Of a stretch of 64,000 nucleotides of DNA, positions 14,578 through 51,996 are shown one piece after another. The notes under the pieces were generated by a model. The model had not been told where the DNA came from, made no database searches, and worked only from the letters and a program-made list of their open reading frames with translations. How positions within the stretch are numbered: position 1 is the stretch's first letter; each line of letters begins with the position of its first letter. The position numbers were made by a program, and so were the translations under genes. The DNA is from Dendrobates tinctorius. Lineage: Eukaryota. The stretch spans positions 13,454,001 to 13,518,000 of the forward strand of contig NW_027361677.1 in the NCBI RefSeq assembly GCF_039654945.1. Direction: 5' to 3'.

Positions 14578-15075
14578 TAACAAATAAGTTGCGCTCTTAA
14601 CAGTGCCACACATTGTCCCTGAATGTCAACTATAGTGCCCGAGGTTAATACCAGCAGCACTGTGAACCTACACAGAATTCTATATTAAAGTGTGTGGTTT
14701 TAACAGTAGTATCTTCAGGAAGCAGCAATTCTTCTGATAATCTTGCAGGGGGTCTAAGAGGTAATGTTTCTCCTTGTTGAGAAGGAAAAACCAAGTCAGA
14801 GTGAGGAGACTTATAGGCCATATATGTTCCTCTGGGAAATTAAATATGCAAATTGTCTCTTCAGAGAGGAAGAGGACTAGAATTTGCTGCTTCCAATAGG
14901 TGGCACTAATATTCTATCCCTCTTTCTCACTGAAGAGGAAATTTGCATATTTAATTTCCCAGAGGAGCATGCATGGCATTTAGGTCTCCTCACTCTGACA
15001 TGTCATACTTGGCTTGACCCTCTCCACAAGGAGAAATGTTACTCTTTAGACCTCAGTTCGGAGCCTTTCACCTAG

Positions 15076-15155
15076 CCAAATCAGATCTTATATTTTGCAT
15101 TGAGGAGGGGCAACACCCCAAAACACAGTGTCTGGAAATTAAGATTCTGGTTTGG
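15076..15155 (+). ncRNA. Type I hammerhead ribozyme motif, degenerate (C3>U, G12>A)
   Basis: TTTGCA-[T]TGAGGA-GGGG-CAACA-CCCC-[A]AAAC-ACAGT-GTC-TGGAAA. Stem I extends outward as CCAAATCAGA-TCTTA / TAAGA-T-TCTGGTTTGG. Confidence 0.75.
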
Positions 15156-15209
15156 CTTTTATCCCTAGTCCTACTGCAAGGCTCGTTAAAGAGTCAATAT
15201 TGACTTTTA

Positions 15210-15481
15210 AGAGTCAGTGATAAGCAGTCATGAAGGAGCGCTTAGGAAGCAACCCAGGGGTGGACAGGATGTCAGGTCTCCATCGCAGCTCCAGTCGAGA
15301 ACCTCCGATGGAGGATGGGAGCAATGAGAAAATGGAAAACAGTCTTAGGAGCGCAGGAAAGAGATTAAGACAAGAGATAGGGTTAAGCCACAATGTGTTT
15401 CGACGGAGGAACGCATTGTGGTTTAACCCCATCTCTCGTCTGAGTCTCTTTCCTGCCCTCCTAAGACAGTTTTCCATTTTC
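15210..15481. mobile_element. Fold-back insertion with 16-bp target-site duplication, probably Penelope-like (PLE)-derived
   Basis: TCAATATTGACTTTTA at 15194-15209 and 15482-15497. Internal palindrome ~15325-15484 centred on ACAATGTGTTTCGAC..GGAACGCATTGTG, a remnant of GAAACGCGTT. Confidence 0.65.
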
Positions 15482-17289
15482 TCAATATTGACTTTTAGGA
15501 TTGCTGCTTCCAAAAAGTGGAGCTAGAGTTCTACTCCTCTTCCTCTATGACGAGGCTATTTGCATACAGGAATCTTGCAAGAAACATGTGTTCGTATCCT
15601 GTTAAATTCCAACTTTAGCTTGGGGCAGATTAAAGCTTTCTCCTCCTTAACCAATGGAGTAAGGTTTAGTTATTTATGTCCTTTTACAAATAAAGCAGAG
15701 GGGAGAGGCTCCTGGTGCAGCCAATTGTATAACAGTCAAGCAAAGACAGTGAGGAGGAGGAGGAGTAGGAGGAGAAGGAGGAGGGGTCATAACTGATTGG
15801 CTAAGACACAGAGAAGATTATTTTATATATGTTTGACAGCTCCAGTTGTAACACACACAATAGGATTAAAGAAAAGGAGAATAGAAGTAGTAGTGCTGGA
15901 ATACATTTTAATATATTTTTTATGTTTTGCGTTCCTTTAAGATATGATGAAATGGTAGTAGAAACTGTTTTATAAACTGCATATAACTTATTTTATAGTA
16001 GAAGACTTTTATAACTTTTTTCATAGTTAGATTCTACTTCATATTTGGAACATCCTTTAGATGCTTGCACATTATAGAATTCTAGAACATCATTTGTAAT
16101 TCCATCGAATGAAAAGGACACTCTATAATCCCAAACAGAGATGAGTAGCATAAGCCCCGGGGCCATACATGAAAGTCAGTGAGGCACTGACTCTTGACAT
16201 TTTTAATCAATTGTAATAGTAAATTGGAAATGATACTCTTTAGAGAGATGTAAGGTTTTCCTGCCAGCTTCTCAGTCACTGGCATAGAATAAAATTTTAT
16301 TTAGCGATACACAAAGGCACATTTAGTTGACGGGTTACTTTTGCAAAAACTAAAACAATTGTGACAAAATAAATAACAAAATAATACATTTGGTAGACTT
16401 CAATTTTTGGAGAGTTTACCCAACCCTTAGAATAGAGATGTTGATGTCTTGATGTCATTGATAAGAACTTATGAAACATCAAGACATTTTTGACTGCTTT
16501 TAGAAAAAAACAAGGCAACTGTAGAGAAAAAGTTCATTTTGGTGATAAGTTTTATTCTTCTTCAGGAGCACGTCTACTTTCTGCTTTGTCGGGGGGGCAG
16601 TGCATCCTGAAGATTGACAGCTCCGATCTGCAGCATGGTTGTGCTTATAGTCCAGACCATCTGATGCTGCTAGCATAGACCGCGTTGGAGAAGTTTCAAG
16701 GGTTCAAGGGGAGTAAAACTTTGGAAACTTCAGAGTTGCGTGAGACATGATGAGACTACAGGTTGGCTGGTAACCTTGGCCGTATACTGTAAAATAAAAA
16801 GTCTTGAGAACGAAAGGATAAGGAGTAAATTTCAAAGTTTCTTGTGTTTTCAAATTGCTTGCAATTTTGCCCGTTTATGAACTTGAGAAAACCCCTTTAA
16901 CTCTAAATTGAAGCAACATCATAAAATGTCCATATAATAGAAAACTATTGATGTGATTCCATTTTTGCAGAAAATGCAACTACATTGGAAGTCATCTATA
17001 TATTAGGGTTTTTATAAACTGATAGGAATTTTTTCACTTTTTTATAGGTTAAACATGGCGGAATGACCACTGTAACAATAAGTGACAGACTAAAAAGTAA
17101 GAAAAATCCATATGTTAACTACATGGACAAAAGTATTGTCACTAAGGATGAGCGAACTGGACCTGTGGAAGTTCGGGAAGTCTGGATTCTGTTACGAGAC
17201 CCAAAATTTATTCCAAAGTACGCTTTTGGTACCATAACTGTAACCGAACTTCAACTAGAACCCGAACCCGTTTCAATGGGGACCTCTCC

Positions 17290-23453: not shown

Positions 23454-24751
23454 GGATATTTGACTTAACCCAGAAGAATTGGGGATAACTTTCTAAACAA
23501 TAAAATCATTAGACGATAAGTTGCTAATCACTCAGGATCGGTGCTGGCACCACTAGCAATGCCAAAATCTGGAACCCCAAAATTTCCTAAATGTAGCAGA
23601 TGTGCACATGCTTGATCTCTTCTCCAGTCTTTGTCTATGTGACTTTCTGAGAAAAGCAATCACCGTACTCGGCTATTTTTTGCACTCATAGACAATGAAT
23701 GGAGCTACAAATTCCCATACTTAGGTTTTCTGATCTTAGGATTGCTGGGGTTCCCAGCAGTTTGACCCCCCCCCCAGCAATTAGCAAGGTATCCTGTATC
23801 CAAAAGATAAGGGATTACTTTTTTGGGTGGAAGGACCCTTTTAGCAATCTATACATAAACGAGTTTTAAAAACTAATTCTATGACCCACTTACATATTTC
23901 AGTTCCATCTGCTGCCCTGGCCTCGTATTTGGAAACCCATTGTTAAGACTTGCTTTTTACATTTTTTTTTTTTTAAACTCATCTGATCATTTTATTTTTT
24001 TCTTATCTTTTCTTATGTACAGCACTATGGAACCAATGGTGCTCCTAAAAATAAACAAATAATAATAATGTCTGATGAAGCTAATGTACTTACTTTGAAA
24101 ATACACACCAAAAAGTCTACATAATTCTTAAAGTAGCAATTTTATGAGTCCGCCTACAGCTTTGAAAATTAGGCAGAGAAACCTTCACAAAGGATTATAC
24201 AGCCATTGTTATATGGATTGCCAAAGTAAGTACACCAGCCTCATTAAGTCAAAGAGATCTACTTTATAATGTAAACAGTTTTTTGTATTGCGACTTCTTT
24301 TGATAGTCTCTTTAAAGGGGTTGTCCATTGAAAGCAAGCTATGCAAAACCTCTGCACGGGATCACTGGATGATCGGTGGAGGTCCGATCACAGGGACCTC
24401 CACCAATCGACCAAACAGAGAATTTTTTATTCCTGACTACATGCTTTTAGCTATATTATAAAATGAATTAGCAAGTAGGAAGCTATACTGCTGCTCGATT
24501 CATTCTCTATGGGGTTGCTGGGGAAAAAAAACATCATATTGCTTGATAGTCGAAAATGGAATGAATTGCATGGCGGTCAAGTGTTCGCGCTGCCGCTCCT
24601 TTCTAATGGAGATAAAATTGCTCCATTTTGCTGATTGCTCCGGTTCCCATTAGCCAGACCCGTACTCATAAATAATTTTCCATGGATAGGTAATAATTCA
24701 TATGAGATAAGTACTGACTTGACTTATAAAATGCCTATTTTTATATGAGAT

Positions 24752-26093
24752 GGAGTCTAAGGGGTAACAAGTGTCCTTATGAAGAGATTTACATGCCTGA
24801 CATTTCATTGTAAGGAGACATATAAGACATTCAATTCTGCTTTGGAAAATTAGATATGCAAGATGCCTCTTCAGAGAGAAAGATGACTTGAACTCTAGTG
24901 CCACCTATTGGAAGTAGCAATCCTACGAATCAGTATGAACCCTTTAACACACCTTGCCACATGACTTCGTATAAAAGTCACACCAGAGTTTCAACTTCCA
25001 GACACGAGTTTCAGAGTGTTGCCACTCCTGTTATGATTCGGTCACCTAGGAGAATAGCTGGGGAATAAGCTAGGCAACTAGAAAACCAGAAAGGTTGGTA
25101 ACTAAGCAGATTGCAGACCCCTAAAACTAACAACACAACTAGAATTAGCCGTGGGGCGTACCTATGATGCCCTAGATGCCTCGGCACAGTCAAAGAGTTA
25201 ACTAAGCCTAAAGCAAGAAAAGGGAAAGCTAAACTGCCCCGGAGCAGAACCCCAAAGGAATAGATAGCCCCCAAACATATATTGCCGGTGAGACAAGATG
25301 AGGCACAAACGCAGGCAGAAAATAGAGCAAGCAAATGATGGGGCCCAAACTGTCTAGATAGAACAGGACAGGAAAGATACTGTCTGCAATCACGCAAAAA
25401 CCCTAAGAAAAATCCAACACGTCTGATATGCAAAAATACTGAGGCCACACGACCTCTTCCCCACTAGATCAGCATTCTGGTGTGAACTGGACGCAAAGCA
25501 AAAGATACTGATATAACCGGGGACTAGCAATACTGAACAGACTGACATAAGCTGTGGCATATGGAACAGGGTCCAACACTGGTCCCAGCAGGGAACAATG
25601 CTGAACCCACACAGCAAAGCAGAAAGCAGAGAAAGGCAAAAACTGGATCAAATGCAAAAAGATTCCAGCAAACAAATAACTTATCTGAGCGATGCAGGAC
25701 CAAGCAGGGCGCAAGAAGACTTCAAAATGCACAGGAAGAAAACCAAATCAGCAACAACAACTGAGGGAAGTTTGCTCACTTAAATCTTCCCAGTCTGTAA
25801 CACCTGACCTCCAATCATCCTCTTCAGGTGATTGACTTCTGTCAACCCGATCAGCTCCATTACCCGCAGCAACCACCAGAGGGAGCCCAAACTCAGAAGT
25901 CAGTTCAAGAGTGTTCACAACACACTCCTCAGTGCAAATCAAGACTTCTGATTTGGCTGTATGAGAGACTACTGACTGGGGTGTAAGGAGTAACGTTTCC
26001 TCCTTGTGAAGAGTGACATGCCTGACATGTCAGTGCAAGGAGACTTATAGGTCATGTAATGCTTCTCTGAGAAATGAAACATACAAATTGCCT
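24752..26093 (-). mobile_element. Hammerhead-containing ~325-bp monomer repeat, copy 2 (~1.4 tandem units), split by a solo LTR
   Basis: TAAGG(G/A)GTAAC recurs at ~24759 and ~25984 (1225 bp minus 900-bp LTR+TSD = 325). Shares GCCACCTATTGGAAGTAGCAA and CTGATTTGGCT with copy 1. Reconstructed minus-strand motif: TTTGCA-CTGAGGA-GTGG-CAACA-CTCT-GAAAC-TCGT-GTC-TGGAA. Confidence 0.75.
25029..25922. mobile_element. Solo LTR (894 bp)
   Basis: TGTTATGA...TCACAACA inverted termini and a perfect 6-bp TSD CACTCC (25023-25028, 25923-25928). Confidence 0.85.
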
Positions 26094-31752: not shown

Positions 31753-33360
31753 GAGTGGGGCAAAAAAGTATTTAGTCAGTCAGCAATAGTGCAAGTTCCA
31801 CCACTTAAAAAGATGAGAGGCGTCTGTAATTTACATCATAGGTAGACCTCAACTATGGGAGACAAACTGAGAAAAAAAAATCCAGAAAATCACATTGTCT
31901 GTTTTTTTTTTCATTTTATTTGCATATTATGGTGGAAAATAAGTATTTGGTCAGAAACAAAATTTCATCTCAATACTTTGTGATATATCCTTTGTTGGCA
32001 ATGACAGAGGTCAAACGTTTTCTGTAAGTCTTCACAAGGTTGCCACACACTGTTGTTGGTATGTTGGCCCATTCCTCCATGCAGATCTCCTCTAGAGCAG
32101 TGATGTTTTTGGCTTTTCGCTTGGCAACACGGACTTTCAACTCCCTCCAAAGGTTTTCTATAGGGTTGAGATCTGGAGATTGGCTAGGCCACTCCAGGAC
32201 CTTGAAATGCTTCTTACGAAGCCACTCCTTCGTTGCCCTGGCGGTGTGCTTTAGATCATTGTCATGTTGAAAGACCCAGCCACGTTTCATCATCAATGCC
32301 CTTGCTGATGGAAGGAGGTTTGCACTCAAAATCTCACGATACATGGCCCCATTCATTCTTTCATGTACCCGGATCAGTCGTCCTGGCCCCTTTGCAGAGA
32401 AACAGCCCCAAAGCATGATGTTTCCACCACCATGCTTTACAGTAGGTATGGTGTTTGATGGATGCAACTCAGTATTCTTTTTCCTCCAAACACGACAAGT
32501 TGTGTTTCTACCAAACAGTTCCAGTTTGGTTTCATCAGACCATAGGACATTCTCCCAAAACTCCTCTGGATCATCCAAATGCTCTCTAGCAAACTTCAGA
32601 CGGGCCCGGACATGTACAGGCTTAAGCAGTGGGACACGTCTGGCACTGCAGGATCTGAGTCCATGGTGGCGTAGTGTGTTACTTATGGTAGGCCTTGTTA
32701 CATTGGTCCCAGCTCTCTGCAGTTCATTCACTAGGTCCCCCCGCGTGGTTCTGGGATTTTTGCTCACCGTTCTTGTGATCATTCTGACCCCACGGGGTGG
32801 GATTTTGCGTGGAGCACCAGATTGAGGGAGATTATCAGTGGTCTTGTATGTCTTCCATTTTCTAATTATTGCTCCCACAGTTGATTTCTTCACTCCAAGC
32901 TGGTTGGCTATTGCAGATTCAGTCTTCCCAGCCTGGTGCAGGGCTACAATTTTGTTTCTGGTGTCCTTTGACAGCTCTTTGGTCTTCACCATAGTGGAGT
33001 TTGGAGTCAGACTGTTTGAGGGTGTGCACAGGTGTCTTTTTATACTGATAACAAGTTTAAACAGGTGCCATTACTACAGGTAATGAGTGGAAGACAGAGG
33101 AGCCTCTTAAAGAAGAAGTTACAGGTCTGTGAGAGCCAGAAATCTTGATTGCTTGTTTCTGACCAAATACTTATTTTCCACCATAATATGCAAATAAAAT
33201 GAAAAAAAAAACAGACAATGTGATTTTCTGGATTTTTTTTTCTCAGTTTGTCTCCCATAGTTGAGGTCTACCTATGATGTAAATTACAGACGCCTCTCAT
33301 CTTTTTAAGTGGTGGAACTTGCACTATTGCTGACTGACTAAATACTTTTTTGCCCCACTG
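31753..33360 (-). mobile_element. Full-length Tc1-family DNA transposon (1608 bp) with ~210-bp IR/DR-type TIRs
   Basis: TA|GAGTGGGGCAAAAAAGTATTTAGTCAG ... CTGACTAAATACTTTTTTGCCCCACTG|TA. Outer and inner direct repeats AAAAAGTATTTAGTCAG / AATAAGTATTTGGTCAG. Confidence 0.97.
31970..32992 (-). CDS. Tc1 transposase, DD34E, 340 aa, uninterrupted
   Basis: Paired-like HTH N-terminus, GAPRK linker, [23 protein letters not shown]; 34 residues between the second D and E (counted). Confidence 0.95.
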
Positions 33361-47220: not shown

Positions 47221-50200
47221 TAGTGTTGAGCATTCCGATACTGCAATATCGGGTATCGGCCGATATTCGCGGTATCTGAGTTCCGATACTTTTGGAATAT
47301 CTAAAACCGGAATTGGAAGTTCCCATAAAGCAATGAGCCAGTTTGATTTTATTCAGCCAATGAGGAATCCTAAGAAGTGTGGGCACATCCTGTTATGCAT
47401 GTTAGGCATGTTAACTAATGGCATGGCTGTGATTGGCTGCTGAAATGATGTCATAATGCACTATAAAAGACGCCGCCGCCATTTTGTGTTCACTCTGCTG
47501 TGAATTTACTTAGGGACAGGATGCTGCTGTTCTGACTCTGAGGGACAGTGTGACCTAGCGATTTGCTTTACTTTATTGTGCTTTACCCAGGCTACTTTAG
47601 CAACCGCTGTGTGAGAAGCTTTCTTTTGCCTTGCAGCGCTGTTCACGGCTGTCTGTGAGGTCTCTATGTGTGAGTGCAGCTCACGCTGTAGTGTGTTCTG
47701 CAGCCACCTCAGGTTGTAGTCCACTCAGCGTGCGTCACTGCCTCATACATTGTCCTTTTTTGCATTAGTGCTGCTCAATTTTCCAGATTTCTCCTATTAG
47801 TGTGGCTCCATCCGTATCCAGCTAGAATATTTGCAAATACTATATAGGAGTAGATAGAGGAGCCTTTCTGCTGGCTTGTGCCCTGCTGCCCCAGCCAGAT
47901 TAGTATTAGCCTATTTTTGGAGTCTCGTCTATTGCATTGTAGGTTACCTTCCTGCATTGTAATAGCTAGAAAAAGTTTGTGATACTATCGGTTTTACATC
48001 TTTGGGCACATCCAGTGTCTTTTTGTGAAAAAAAAAAAAAATTAATAAACTTCACCAAACACTCCACTTTACAGTTATGTAGGCCACATTAGCTCATATT
48101 AAAGTCTAGTCCACACTTTATAAAATTAGTGTTTCTTATACCTGTTAGCAGCTATTCAGGAATAAGCACACTAAGCCCTTAGTACTTTTCTGCCTATCTT
48201 TATCAGTCTACCAAGATGAAGAAGGCAGGGAGTAAGGCTCGTGGGCGTGGAGTAATTCCACCCACAGCATCACGCTCCCTGTCATCCTCACACTCCCAGG
48301 TCAGTCTACAGCCATCGGTAGCACAGGCATGGGAGAAAAGGCGCCTATACTCGGCAAACCACCCCTGAGCACAGGCTCTGAATGCTGGCATTGCAAAACT
48401 ACTGTCCCTTGAAATGCTCTCTTTCAGGCTGGTGGAGACTGACACCTTCCGTAACTTCATGGCATCGGCAGTCCCACAATACAACGTGCCCAGCCACTTT
48501 TATTTCAGCAGGCAAGCCGTCCCTGTCCTGCAAAAGCATGTGGAGGGAAAAATTAAACATGCGCTACTAAACGCCATCAGTAGCAAGGTCCACCTGACCA
48601 CCGATGCGTGGACCAGTAACCATGGACAGTGACGATATCTTTCCCTCACTGCCCATAGAGTAAATGTTGTGGAGCTGGGTACAGATCTTGAGAGTGGCGC
48701 TGTACGTATTCTGCCAACTCCAAGGATTGCAGAAATCCAGTCTGTGCACATTGACTCCTCCTAATACTGCAGTTCCTCTGAATTAGCGCTGCAGGAGCCG
48801 TCACAGTCTACCTCCATATGGACCCGTGACGGCTTAACTGTTACGACCGATATGAGCACAGCCATGGCCAAACGTCATCAGGCCATATTGAAATTAATTT
48901 CTTTGGGAAATCGAAGCCACACAGTGCAGGAGCTCTGGAATGCCATCAAGCAGGAGAGCAACATGTGGTTTGTGCCAGCGAATCTCCAGCCAGGTATGGT
49001 AGCGTTTGACAATGGCCGAAATCTGGTGGCAGCTCTAGGCCTAGGCAACCTCACTCACATCCCATGTCTGGCACATGTGCTCAACTTTATCGGGCAGAGT
49101 TTTTTGAGGGACTATCCGGATCTTGATGCACTGCTGCACAAGGTCCGCATAGAGTGCGCTCACTTGCGGCGTTCCAGCATGGTAAGATCGCACATTGCAG
49201 CTCTGCAGCGCCGATTCCGCCTTCCGGAACATCGCATCATATGTGACCTACCCACCAGGTGGAATTCAACGTTACATATGTTGGAGAGGTTGTGTGAGCA
49301 ACAGGCAGCAGTAATGGAGTACCAGCTGCATCAGGCGCAAACAAGTCGCACTGCGCGCCGTTCACACTTCACCACCACTGAGTGAGCCTCTATGAAGGAC
49401 ATCTGCCACGCTTTGCGTGCCTTCGATGATTTCACGTGGATGGTGAGTGCAGATGATGCACTAGTCAGCTTGACTATCCCCCTTATCTGCCTGCTTGAAA
49501 AAACACTGCAAGCACTTGGGGAGAAGGTTGTGGAAGAGGTGGAGGATGAGGAGTCACAAATGCCATCTGCTTCTGGACAGTCTGCGCAACATGGTTCCTC
49601 ACAAAGGCCTAAGCAGGGGACACTTTGTGAGGAGGATGAGGAGGAGTCAATGGAGGAGGAAGACATCTGTCCAGAGGAGGGAGGTACACAATGCTCTAGT
49701 AGTCAGTATGTAGAGCGAGGGTGGGGTGATGCAGAGCAGACAGAGATGACGCCTCAAGCAGGGGACAGCGTTTCTTGGCCAGTTGGCAGTCTGCAGCACA
49801 TGGTTGATTTCATGCTGCAGTGCCTGAGAAACGACCGCCGCATCGCCCACATTCTCAACACGGCTGATTATTGGGTGTACACCCTCCTAGATCCTCGCTA
49901 CCGGGACAACTTACAAAGCCTCATAACACCGTTGAACCGGGAGCGCAAAATGCGGGAGTACCAAGACACACTGGTGCATTCCATCATGTTCTCCATTCCA
50001 CCCGAGAGCAGTGCTGCTAGTGCTTTACAAAGCAGCTCAGTGCATCGAAGCAGTGGAGGAAGCTCTGCACAAAGAGGGAGCAGAAGCAGCGCCTCAGCAC
50101 ATGTCAAGACCAGTATGGCCCAAATGTGGCAAAGTTTTGTGTCCCCGCCACAAATGTCTACACCATCACAGACGGCTCCAGTCAGCAGGAGGCAACGTTT

Positions 50201-51996
50201 CCGTCAGATGGTGACAGACTACATGTCTTGCCCTCTCAGTGTTCTCCCACACGGTTCTTCCCCCTTCAAATTTTGTGTCTCTAAGCTGGATACATGGCCA
50301 GAGCTTAGCCAGTATGCATTGGAGGTGCTGGCTTGCCCTGCTGCTAGTATATTATCGGAACGCGTCTTTAGTGCCGCAGGTGGTGTACTAACAGACCGTC
50401 GCATGCGACTATCCTCCGATAACGTTGACCGGCTTACTTTTCTGAAAATGAACAAGGCCTGGATCTCGCGGGAATTTGCCAGTCCTCTTCCAGATTAAAT
50501 AATTGGTTGGCAACAGTATCCAGGTCTCCTGTTGTGTTCATGTTTCTACCACCTGAACTGTAATCCCTGGGCTCCAACACCGCCAGTTGCTGCTCAGCAG
50601 TGCCGTCTGCACAGTCAGCACTTGCTCCTGTGTTATTGGGGTTCAGTAACGTCAGCTGATCCCCTGCTGTGTGTCCAGAAATTTCTCCTGCTCCGACCAC
50701 ACTCACACTACTACAGATATTAAACTTGCTCCAATTAGGCCTCTAGCTACACTCTGTTTCTCCTGTAATCCCTGGGCTCCAACACCGCCAGTTGCTGCTC
50801 AGAAGTTCTGTCTGCACAGTCAACACATGCTCCAGTGTTATTGGGGTTCAGTAACATCAGCTGATCCCCTGCTGTGTGTCCGGCAATTTCGCCTGCTCTG
50901 TCCACACTCACACTACTACAGATATTAAATTTGCTCCAATTAGGCCTCTGGCTACACTCTGTTTCTACTGCAATCCCTGGGCTCCAACACCGCCAGTTGC
51001 TGCTCAGAAGTGTCTTTGGCACAGGTACTCCCTCCTGCCCAGCCTGGTTCCAGCACGCCAGCTGTTTCCGGGTAGTGTCAACGTCACTTTGCCTCCAATA
51101 CGTTGTCCTGTCATGTTGCGGTCGGGTTAGCCGACTCTATGGTGCCTGCAGTTTAGGCGCTTCCTATGTGGGCTGCGGGATCTGGCAATGAAGGCTGGTT
51201 CCGTAGTGCCAATAAGACAAGCTCCCCCTGTAGGACTATGGGTTTCGGTAACTCCGGCCGGCTCACAGCCTTGCAACTTTTTTTCATGTGTACCTTCTGC
51301 TGCCTATGTGAGTTACAGTACCATTAGCTGGTTCTTTGGAAGTCAATCTTGAATATGTCCCCCTGGGTTCCAGTAATGTCAGCTGGTTCCAGGCAGAGCC
51401 TTTGGCTTGGGTGCCTCCTTCTTGGTATCCGAGTTCCACCAACGTCTGCTGGTCCTTGGTAGTACTTTCTGGCACAGGTACCTCCTGCTTAGTATCCCGG
51501 TTCCAGTACCATCAGCTGGTCCTCAGTAGTTCCATTGGCTCTTGTACCTTTGGCTACCCATCCATGTTCCAGTACCGTCAGCTGGTTCTCAGCAGTTCCT
51601 CAGCCTTCTTGTACCTTCTGCTACATTTCCAAGTTCAAGCTTTTTGAAATGGTTTTTGGTAATCACTCTTGATCTCCCTGACAACGACCCTGAAGACCAC
51701 CCCGACGAAGACGACGAAACGTCTTAAAAGAAAAAATTAATTCCTGCTATTCTTTTTGATTGGGCTAAACCTCTATGCCTTTAATGTCTCCTCCACCTCT
51801 CCCAATACATTCTACATTATTCTTAGTTGTTTTCCTTCATGTAGAATAAACCTACAAGGAAAGTAAGGGTTTATTTTCATTCCGATATTTGTGTCCCATT
51901 GACTTGCATTGGTTTCGGAATCGGTGATATCCGATATTTTTGGGGTATCGGTCCGATCTGATATTTCCCGATATCGGAAGGCTTCGCTCAACACTA
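47221..51996 (+). mobile_element. hAT-superfamily DNA transposon (4.8 kb), decayed
   Basis: TIR TAGTGTTGAGC...GCTCAACACTA, subterminal CCGATA repeats, degenerate 8-bp TSD, internal transposase pseudogene and a 205-bp tandem repeat at ~50558-51008. Confidence 0.92.
48216..50498 (+). pseudogene. hAT transposase pseudogene (one frame, four premature stops, no BED finger seen)
   Basis: Motifs LTTDAWTS, FDNGRN, CLAHVLN, PTRWNST and CPAASILSERVFSAAG. In-frame stops at 48366, 48630, 48762 and 49383. Confidence 0.9.

Follow-up and report, generated by a model that had tools for sequence, protein, structure and literature searches.

Repeat-associated hammerhead ribozymes were reported in Xenopus in 2011 (PMC3088659), followed in 2014 by some 9,000 minimal hammerheads in X. 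tropicalis (PMC4209133). A recent preprint defines 57 Xenopus families of non-LTR retrozymes (LTR, long terminal repeat), relates them to the pseudo-LTRs (pLTRs) of Penelope elements, and gives a mean amphibian consensus of 316 bp (Li, Clavereau and Pollet 2026, 10.64898/2026.07.22.740005). Metazoan non-LTR retrozymes are non-coding, with units of 150-450 bp joined head to tail, type I hammerheads, a GC content below 50% and target-site duplications longer than 4 bp; their RNA occurs both as linear and as circular monomers (PMC7229834). In metazoans, the canonical type I hammerhead combines a 6-bp helix I and a 4-bp helix II with a short palindromic helix III, and it probably cleaves in dimeric form (PMC4209133, PMC7229834). 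Here we analyse a putative element of this kind in a stretch of 64,000 nucleotides from the frog Dendrobates tinctorius (contig NW_027361677.1, positions 13,454,001 to 13,518,000 of the forward strand), hereafter the window, whose first base is position 1.

Two further systems are relevant for comparison. Penelope-like elements leave a recognizable insertion signature, in which a partial tandem lies beside an inverted copy truncated at its 5' end and the 3' ends are precise (PMC8557442), and a Penelope reverse transcriptase (RT) starts at internal sites of its own RNA in vitro (PMC11167929). Newt satellite 2 is reported to have a promoter of the small nuclear RNA (snRNA) type (Coats et al. 1994, as cited in PMC2220036).

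We conclude, with a probability of about 0.78, that window positions 14749-15570 are a single old, non-coding non-LTR retrozyme insertion (copy 1), built from a 329-bp repeat with one type I hammerhead per unit. The insertion is best read as non-autonomous and as probably made by a Penelope-like enzyme.

Anatomy of the insertion

Three pieces make up the single insertion of copy 1: a stretch of the unit that is inverted and 5'-truncated, a full 329-bp unit, and the 66-bp start of the next unit (Table 1; positions within the unit are written q1 to q329). The full unit is split near its end by a 288-bp insertion, which consists of a 269-bp body (15213-15481) and one of the two copies of a 19-bp direct repeat (15194-15212 and 15482-15500, identical at 18 of 19 positions). 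The segment 14884-14949 recurs at 15501-15566 with a spacing of 617 bp, from which subtraction of the 288 bp leaves a period of 329 bp, confirmed by a blastn search with 14884-15212. The two flanks of the whole insertion are identical over 9 nt and agree at 10 of 11 positions overall, a target-site duplication of 9-11 bp. Spelled AATCTTGCA[G/A]G, it is longer than the 4 bp of LTR retrozymes. Twenty of 5000 random pairs of 30-nt segments drawn from the same sequence had at least 9 nt in common, which gives the duplication a p of about 0.004.

The open reading frames (ORFs) of the 329-bp unit are short and unconserved. A 61-aa open frame runs across the hammerhead motif; a protein search with it returned no candidate, and the frame is not conserved in the second copy of the repeat found in the window (copy 2, described below). 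There are no N stretches in the window. At the DNA level, copy 1 thus has the features of a non-LTR retrozyme (a 329-bp non-coding unit, head-to-tail arrangement, low GC content, duplication of more than 4 bp), and also the Penelope-type arrangement of an inverted piece followed by 1.2 direct units. Judged by its divergence, the insertion is old, with 83% identity between inverted arm and direct unit in alignment (Kimura two-parameter distance, K2P, 0.20) and a difference from the family majority at about one place in ten. Twin priming of the L1 type could also have produced the inverted piece, but was rejected: the segment q28 to about q171 does not adjoin, on the RNA, the position where the direct piece begins, poly(A) is absent, and the Penelope signature fits better.

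The original prediction, made from the letters of this DNA, had described both the 329-bp period that appears once the 288-bp insertion is removed and an inverted partial copy at one end, and we recovered both, the latter as the reverse complement of q28 to about q171. It had placed the element at 14748-15546; the element itself stands, while its end moves to 15570 and the flanking duplication is added here.

Table 1. Positions in the window of copy 1, its parts, copy 2 and the transposon ORFs nearby
Feature	Position	Strand	Basis
Left target-site duplication, AATCTTGCAGG	14738-14748		comparison with 15571-15581
Inverted 5'-truncated unit piece, q28 to about q171, its own 3' end outward	14749-14883	-	inverted repeats, blastn, alignment
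Full 329-bp non-coding unit, q1-329, GC 42%	14884-15212	+	repeats, blastn, alignment, depth
Octamer ATTTGCAT, q58-65	14941-14948	+	sequence; 152 bp before the core; directly before the q66 end
Type I hammerhead layout with extended helix I	15074-15157 (core 15100-15132)	+	sequence, fold, descriptor scan
Private secondary insertion, 288 bp	15213-15500		direct repeats and family contigs lacking it
Start of next unit, q1-66, ending ...ATTTGCATA, plus 4 extra bases CAGG	15501-15570	+	repeat, blastn, alignment
Right target-site duplication, AATCTTGCAAG	15571-15581		comparison with 14738-14748
Second, independent decayed copy (copy 2)	24751-26093	-	blastn and alignment; period about 325
340-aa Tc1/mariner transposase ORF, apparently intact (HTH_Tnp_Tc3_2, HTH_SB, DDE_3)	31970-32992	-	
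368-aa ORF with hAT dimerisation domain	49392-50498	+	

Hammerhead layout of the unit

On the plus strand, 15094-15138 reads UUUGCA, UUGAGGA, GGGG-CAACA-CCCC, AAAA, C-ACAGU-G and UC, followed by UGGAAA, which is the motif string originally proposed. Helix II is formed by GGGG and CCCC with the loop CAACA, and the GUC ends at 15132, so that the predicted cut falls between 15132 and 15133. The layout is that of a type I hammerhead: helix II is closed by a loop, helix III (ACAC-A-GUGU with GUC) is closed with U16.1 and H17, and helix I is open. The extended, bulged stem I of the prediction was likewise present in the fold, with 15074-15099 paired with 15133-15157 (fold of 15060-15170, z -3.0). 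Folded as a circle, the plus-strand 329-bp monomer has a z of -2.9 against shuffles, compared with -0.8 for the minus strand.

Copy 1 departs from the hammerhead core at two invariant positions, with U at 15100 (C3; strand UUGAGGA) and A at 15120 (G12; strand AAAA). In addition, pair 1.3-2.3 of helix I is G-G owing to the G at 15135, leaving five of six pairs, which become six of six with the C found in the family. Judged by its sequence, copy 1 is inert because of the C3-to-U and G12-to-A changes, the loss of one helix I pair, a substitution level of about 10% in each arm and the later 288-bp insertion.

We scanned the window with a hammerhead descriptor requiring a 4-bp helix II, a closed helix III, at least five of the six pairs in helix I and no more than two mismatches in the core, and the site at 15094-15138 alone matched. 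The motif of copy 1 is by itself suggestive and not significant; the family data carry the case.

Family copies in runs from the same organism

Four runs from the same organism (X1, X5, X8 and X22, of which X1 is a DNA run) were aligned to 14600-15720 at a likeness of at least 80%. In X1, 11,547 contigs matched, and depth over the unit was 10^3 to 10^5, compared with 4-5 over the flanks, which are single copy. A 523-nt contig from X5, which is another sample, spans the left junction with 4 differences, and the insertion is therefore not private to one individual. In X22, 140 family contigs lie on the element and none on the flanks; the RNA label of this run is guessed and DNA may be present, and its contigs do not display ends, strand or circles.

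The majority letters of the family repair the lesions of copy 1 exactly where it departs from a working hammerhead. At 15100, C (the C3 of the core) replaces T in 97% of the depth in X1 and 96% of that in X5, and in 100% for both X8 and X22. At 15135, C replaces G in 97% of X1 depth, and helix I becomes a perfect 6-bp helix (UUUGCA/UGCAAA). One pair of the extended stem covaries: the fold partners 15089/15141 are U-A in copy 1, and C-G in both the family and copy 2. The family hammerhead thus fits the canonical metazoan type I design, with 6 bp in helix I, 4 bp in helix II and a short palindromic helix III.

The contigs also inform on the arrangement of the units. At least 94 contigs from X1 join 15209 directly to the unit start, several of the joints linking 15209 to 14884-14886, and therefore head-to-tail copies without the 288-bp insertion exist. 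A further 401 contigs depart from the window sequence at the inversion joint, 14882, and go on as plain unit, so that the inverted arm is private to the copy 1 insertion. Tandem copies, on whose presence the original prediction had staked itself, are therefore found in the family. Its expectation of intact tandem copies elsewhere holds as far as better-preserved head-to-tail copies are concerned (C3 in at least 96% of depth, at least 94 junctions), and does not extend to a full core beyond C3 among the positions listed.

A second copy in the window and decay of the core

Copy 2 lies on the minus strand and is about 74-76% identical to copy 1. It consists, in order, of q53-224 (26093-25925), an 895-bp insertion (25030-25924), q220-329 (25029-24921) and q1 to about q171 (24920-24751). 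At the homologous place its core keeps CTGAGGA and GAAAC, whereas its helix II has decayed to GTGG/CTCT. The prediction had noted this copy, with its period of about 325 bp and its retained C3 and G12, and had considered both copies in the window dead, and the lesions in the core of copy 1 together with the splitting of copy 2 by 895 bp in helix II agree with that view.

At the dinucleotide C11.1-G12, copy 1 has CA and copy 2 has TG. The ancestral state was therefore probably CG, a CpG, since both forms are one-step transition products of it, while other ancestors need two changes in one copy. On the letters of these two copies, the hammerhead core has decayed at its one CpG. We infer that a hypermutable CpG would also explain why G12 is not near-fixed among old copies.

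The 895-bp insertion is non-coding and lies within helix II of copy 2, between CTGAGGAG and TGGCAAC on the minus strand. With ends TG...CA and a 4-5 bp duplication, it looks like a solo LTR; no further copy was found within the window, and its longest ORF has no Pfam match.

Insertion 3' ends and the octamer

At least 134 contigs from X1 end at 14845, which corresponds to q66 in the inverted arm, and the sequences beyond are mutually unlike and AT-rich. Contigs from X5 and X8 also end at 15566. Family insertions therefore have a 3' end in common at q66, just after ATTTGCATA, and the copy 1 insertion ends there as well. At about q171 (...TTAGAC(C/T)CC) lie both the 3' end of copy 2 and the end of the inverted arm on its outward side; on these two cases, this position is possibly a second 3' end of the family.

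The octamer, which had been predicted about 150 bp upstream of the core, occurs in all three unit pieces of copy 1, the further sites being 14846-14853 (minus strand) and 15558-15565, and each unit of copy 2 carries it with one mismatch. The octamer or its complement occurs 15 times in the window, 3 of them in copy 1, against 3.6 expected from base composition. By analogy with the snRNA-type promoter of newt satellite 2, a promoter role is possible; a role in RT initiation is an equally possible alternative. We tentatively suggest, as a scenario still on the unlikely side, that most copies end at q66, with a second end at about q171, and that the octamer is part of an RT start signal, besides or instead of a promoter.

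Other repeats in and around the insertion

The 288-bp insertion in copy 1 belongs to a high-copy family, with a depth of 5,000-38,000 over the 15194-15500 region in X1. It has 75-nt inverted arms of its own (15325-15399 and 15410-15484, with 10 nt between them), and its 19-bp duplication is unusually long. Because its layout, with one inverted and one direct piece and a long duplication, is that of the retrozyme insertion, the 288-bp sequence may be another reverse-transcribed non-autonomous element rather than a miniature inverted-repeat transposable element (MITE). No ribozyme motif was recognised in it, and a search against Rfam gave sub-threshold hairpin matches only.

In copy 1, the inverted arm and the direct unit together make a hairpin (14807-14987) that scored 61.5 bits with the model of the plant MIR807 precursor, whose cut-off is 113; this sub-threshold match is an artefact that the long inverted repeat produces. 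The hairpin could be a source of small RNA if it were transcribed.

A (GAG)n microsatellite occupies 15751-15784, 170 bp downstream of copy 1, which does not itself lie within the microsatellite. Microsatellite targets are reportedly preferred by some Penelope-like clades. Among the window ORFs of at least 150 aa, the only domains identified were of the Tc1/mariner and hAT types (Table 1), in what is a transposon-rich region.

Proposed mechanism and alternative explanations

Mobilisation by a Penelope-like enzyme is favoured because the target duplication, the inverted 5' piece, the partial tandem and the shared 3' end all fit it. Following the published retrozyme and Penelope models, in active members of the family the head-to-tail units would be transcribed, and two hammerheads could pair through their near-palindromic helix III (ACAC-A-GUGU, 8 intermolecular pairs) and cut after GUC. 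Cleavage would yield monomers of about 329 nt, which a host RNA ligase could circularise. A Penelope-like RT/endonuclease would then nick the target, with complementary DNA (cDNA) synthesis starting at an internal site of the RNA, mostly at q66 after ATTTGCATA. Copying beyond one unit length would produce the partial tandem, and resolution of the 5' side as an inverted truncated piece would leave the target duplication of 9-11 bp.

Several observations weigh against this account, some concerning the enzyme and others the ribozyme. No ORF for a Penelope RT or a GIY-YIG endonuclease was found in the element or the window (ORFs of at least 150 aa), and the element is therefore non-autonomous at best. 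No Penelope tail of 30-40 bp was recognised, and the two 3' ends, q66 and about q171, lie about 105 nt apart. As for the hammerhead, Rfam model RF00163 was unmatched at the gathering score in the window, and at E values up to 10 in searches of 13 kb and of 161 nt, the matches obtained being solely sub-threshold ones of hairpin type due to the inverted arms, and shuffled windows contained on average 0.20 descriptor sites with up to two core mismatches, 0.02 with up to one and none with zero. The intact core of the family is seen at C3 only, as 15120 (G12) is not among the 40 positions listed, and the covariation in the family rests on majority letters rather than individual copies. All four runs consist of assembled contigs, in which RNA ends at 15132/15133 do not show, and the sole RNA run, X22, is so labelled by a guess. 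Exact and degenerate core patterns gave no match in viral, metagenome and genome contigs.

Of the other explanations, the one that survives best, though improbable, is that copy 1 is a stand-alone pLTR remnant of an autonomous Penelope-like element, and not a member of a separate non-autonomous retrozyme family. It draws on the homology of retrozymes and pLTRs in Xenopus, where 24 of the 57 families match Penelope termini (preprint 10.64898/2026.07.22.740005), and on the insertion architecture, which is alike for the two (PMC8557442). However, the copy 1 insertion is complete between its target duplications without a coding part, in a window with no RT or GIY-YIG ORF, and the family junctions described above join unit end to unit start, not to an ORF. 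The hammerhead is moreover of the canonical 6-bp/4-bp type, whereas metazoan Penelope elements usually have the minimal type (PMC4209133).

It is less probable still that the hammerhead likeness arose by chance in an ordinary non-autonomous repeat that never encoded a ribozyme. The majority letters bring back both C3 and the sixth pair of helix I, which are changes that a functional hammerhead needs, in data from four runs, and this argues against chance despite the failure of Rfam at any threshold and the 0.2 sites expected per window with two core mismatches. The share of G12 in the family is likewise missing from the 40 positions listed, a gap that leaves room for chance; on the other side, copy 2 keeps both core strings, the expectation falls to 0.02 at one core mismatch or fewer, and the CA/TG pair suggests that C11.1-G12 was CG in the ancestor.

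Least credible of all is a foldback or MITE-type DNA transposon with terminal inverted repeats at 14751-14883 and 14911-15052: the arms (92-130 nt, 78-86% complementary, with a 27-nt spacer) and the hairpin-type match to the plant MIR807 model, well under its cut-off, would suit it, but the arms are adjacent and not terminal, the element extends 520 bp more on one side, the element in its entirety lies between the duplicated sites, an inverted arm is absent from copy 2, and the 401 contigs leaving at 14882 make the hairpin private to copy 1.

On the reading of copy 1 as a non-LTR retrozyme insertion, this copy matters little alone, being a dead copy of a kind known from frogs and salamanders, and its worth is that of a worked example. 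The clustered insertion ends could serve for a genome-wide test of where RT starts on retrozyme RNA. If the clustering holds genome-wide, these retrozymes would carry two defined internal RT start sites, as does a Penelope element in vitro; if true, this would be direct genomic evidence of which enzyme moves frog retrozymes.

Comparison with known systems

The Rfam Hammerhead_1 model (RF00163) is resembled in helix order, core strings and open helix I, although neither copy matches it, copy 1 having two core substitutions and copy 2 being split by 895 bp. With newt satellite 2 the frog element shares a unit of about 330 bp, a type I hammerhead needing dimers and an octamer in the unit, a likeness of layout only. 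It differs in being dispersed as short insertions with target duplications and not in long arrays alone, and its octamer is common in the window and sits at the insertion 3' end.

As in Penelope-like insertions, there is a partial tandem, an inverted 5'-truncated piece, heterogeneous AT-rich flanks where family copies end and a precise shared 3' end pointing to internal RT initiation. The frog retrozyme differs from Penelope-like elements in having no RT/endonuclease ORF and no recognisable tail of 30-40 bp, and in its hammerhead being canonical and not minimal.

The closest match is with the amphibian non-LTR retrozymes, such as axolotl Rtz331 and Rtz353 and the Xenopus families. A literature search for the helix II string gave no match, and the likeness to the published families is one of layout; copy 1 itself, with U3 and A12, is predicted to be catalytically dead. 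The original prediction had supposed that the kind was probably poorly annotated, which the published frog hammerhead repeats and Xenopus retrozymes contradict (PMC3088659, PMC4209133, 10.64898/2026.07.22.740005); its identification of a decayed copy of a non-coding hammerhead repeat of about 330 bp, of the non-LTR retrozyme kind, agrees with the anatomy and the family data. A non-coding unit of about 330 bp with one type I hammerhead, a helix III that is weak, palindromic and suited to cleavage as a dimer, copies joined head to tail, a GC content below 50%, a duplication longer than 4 bp and a very high copy number are shared with the amphibian retrozymes, and the unit is a clean if ordinary example of a kind already published for frogs.

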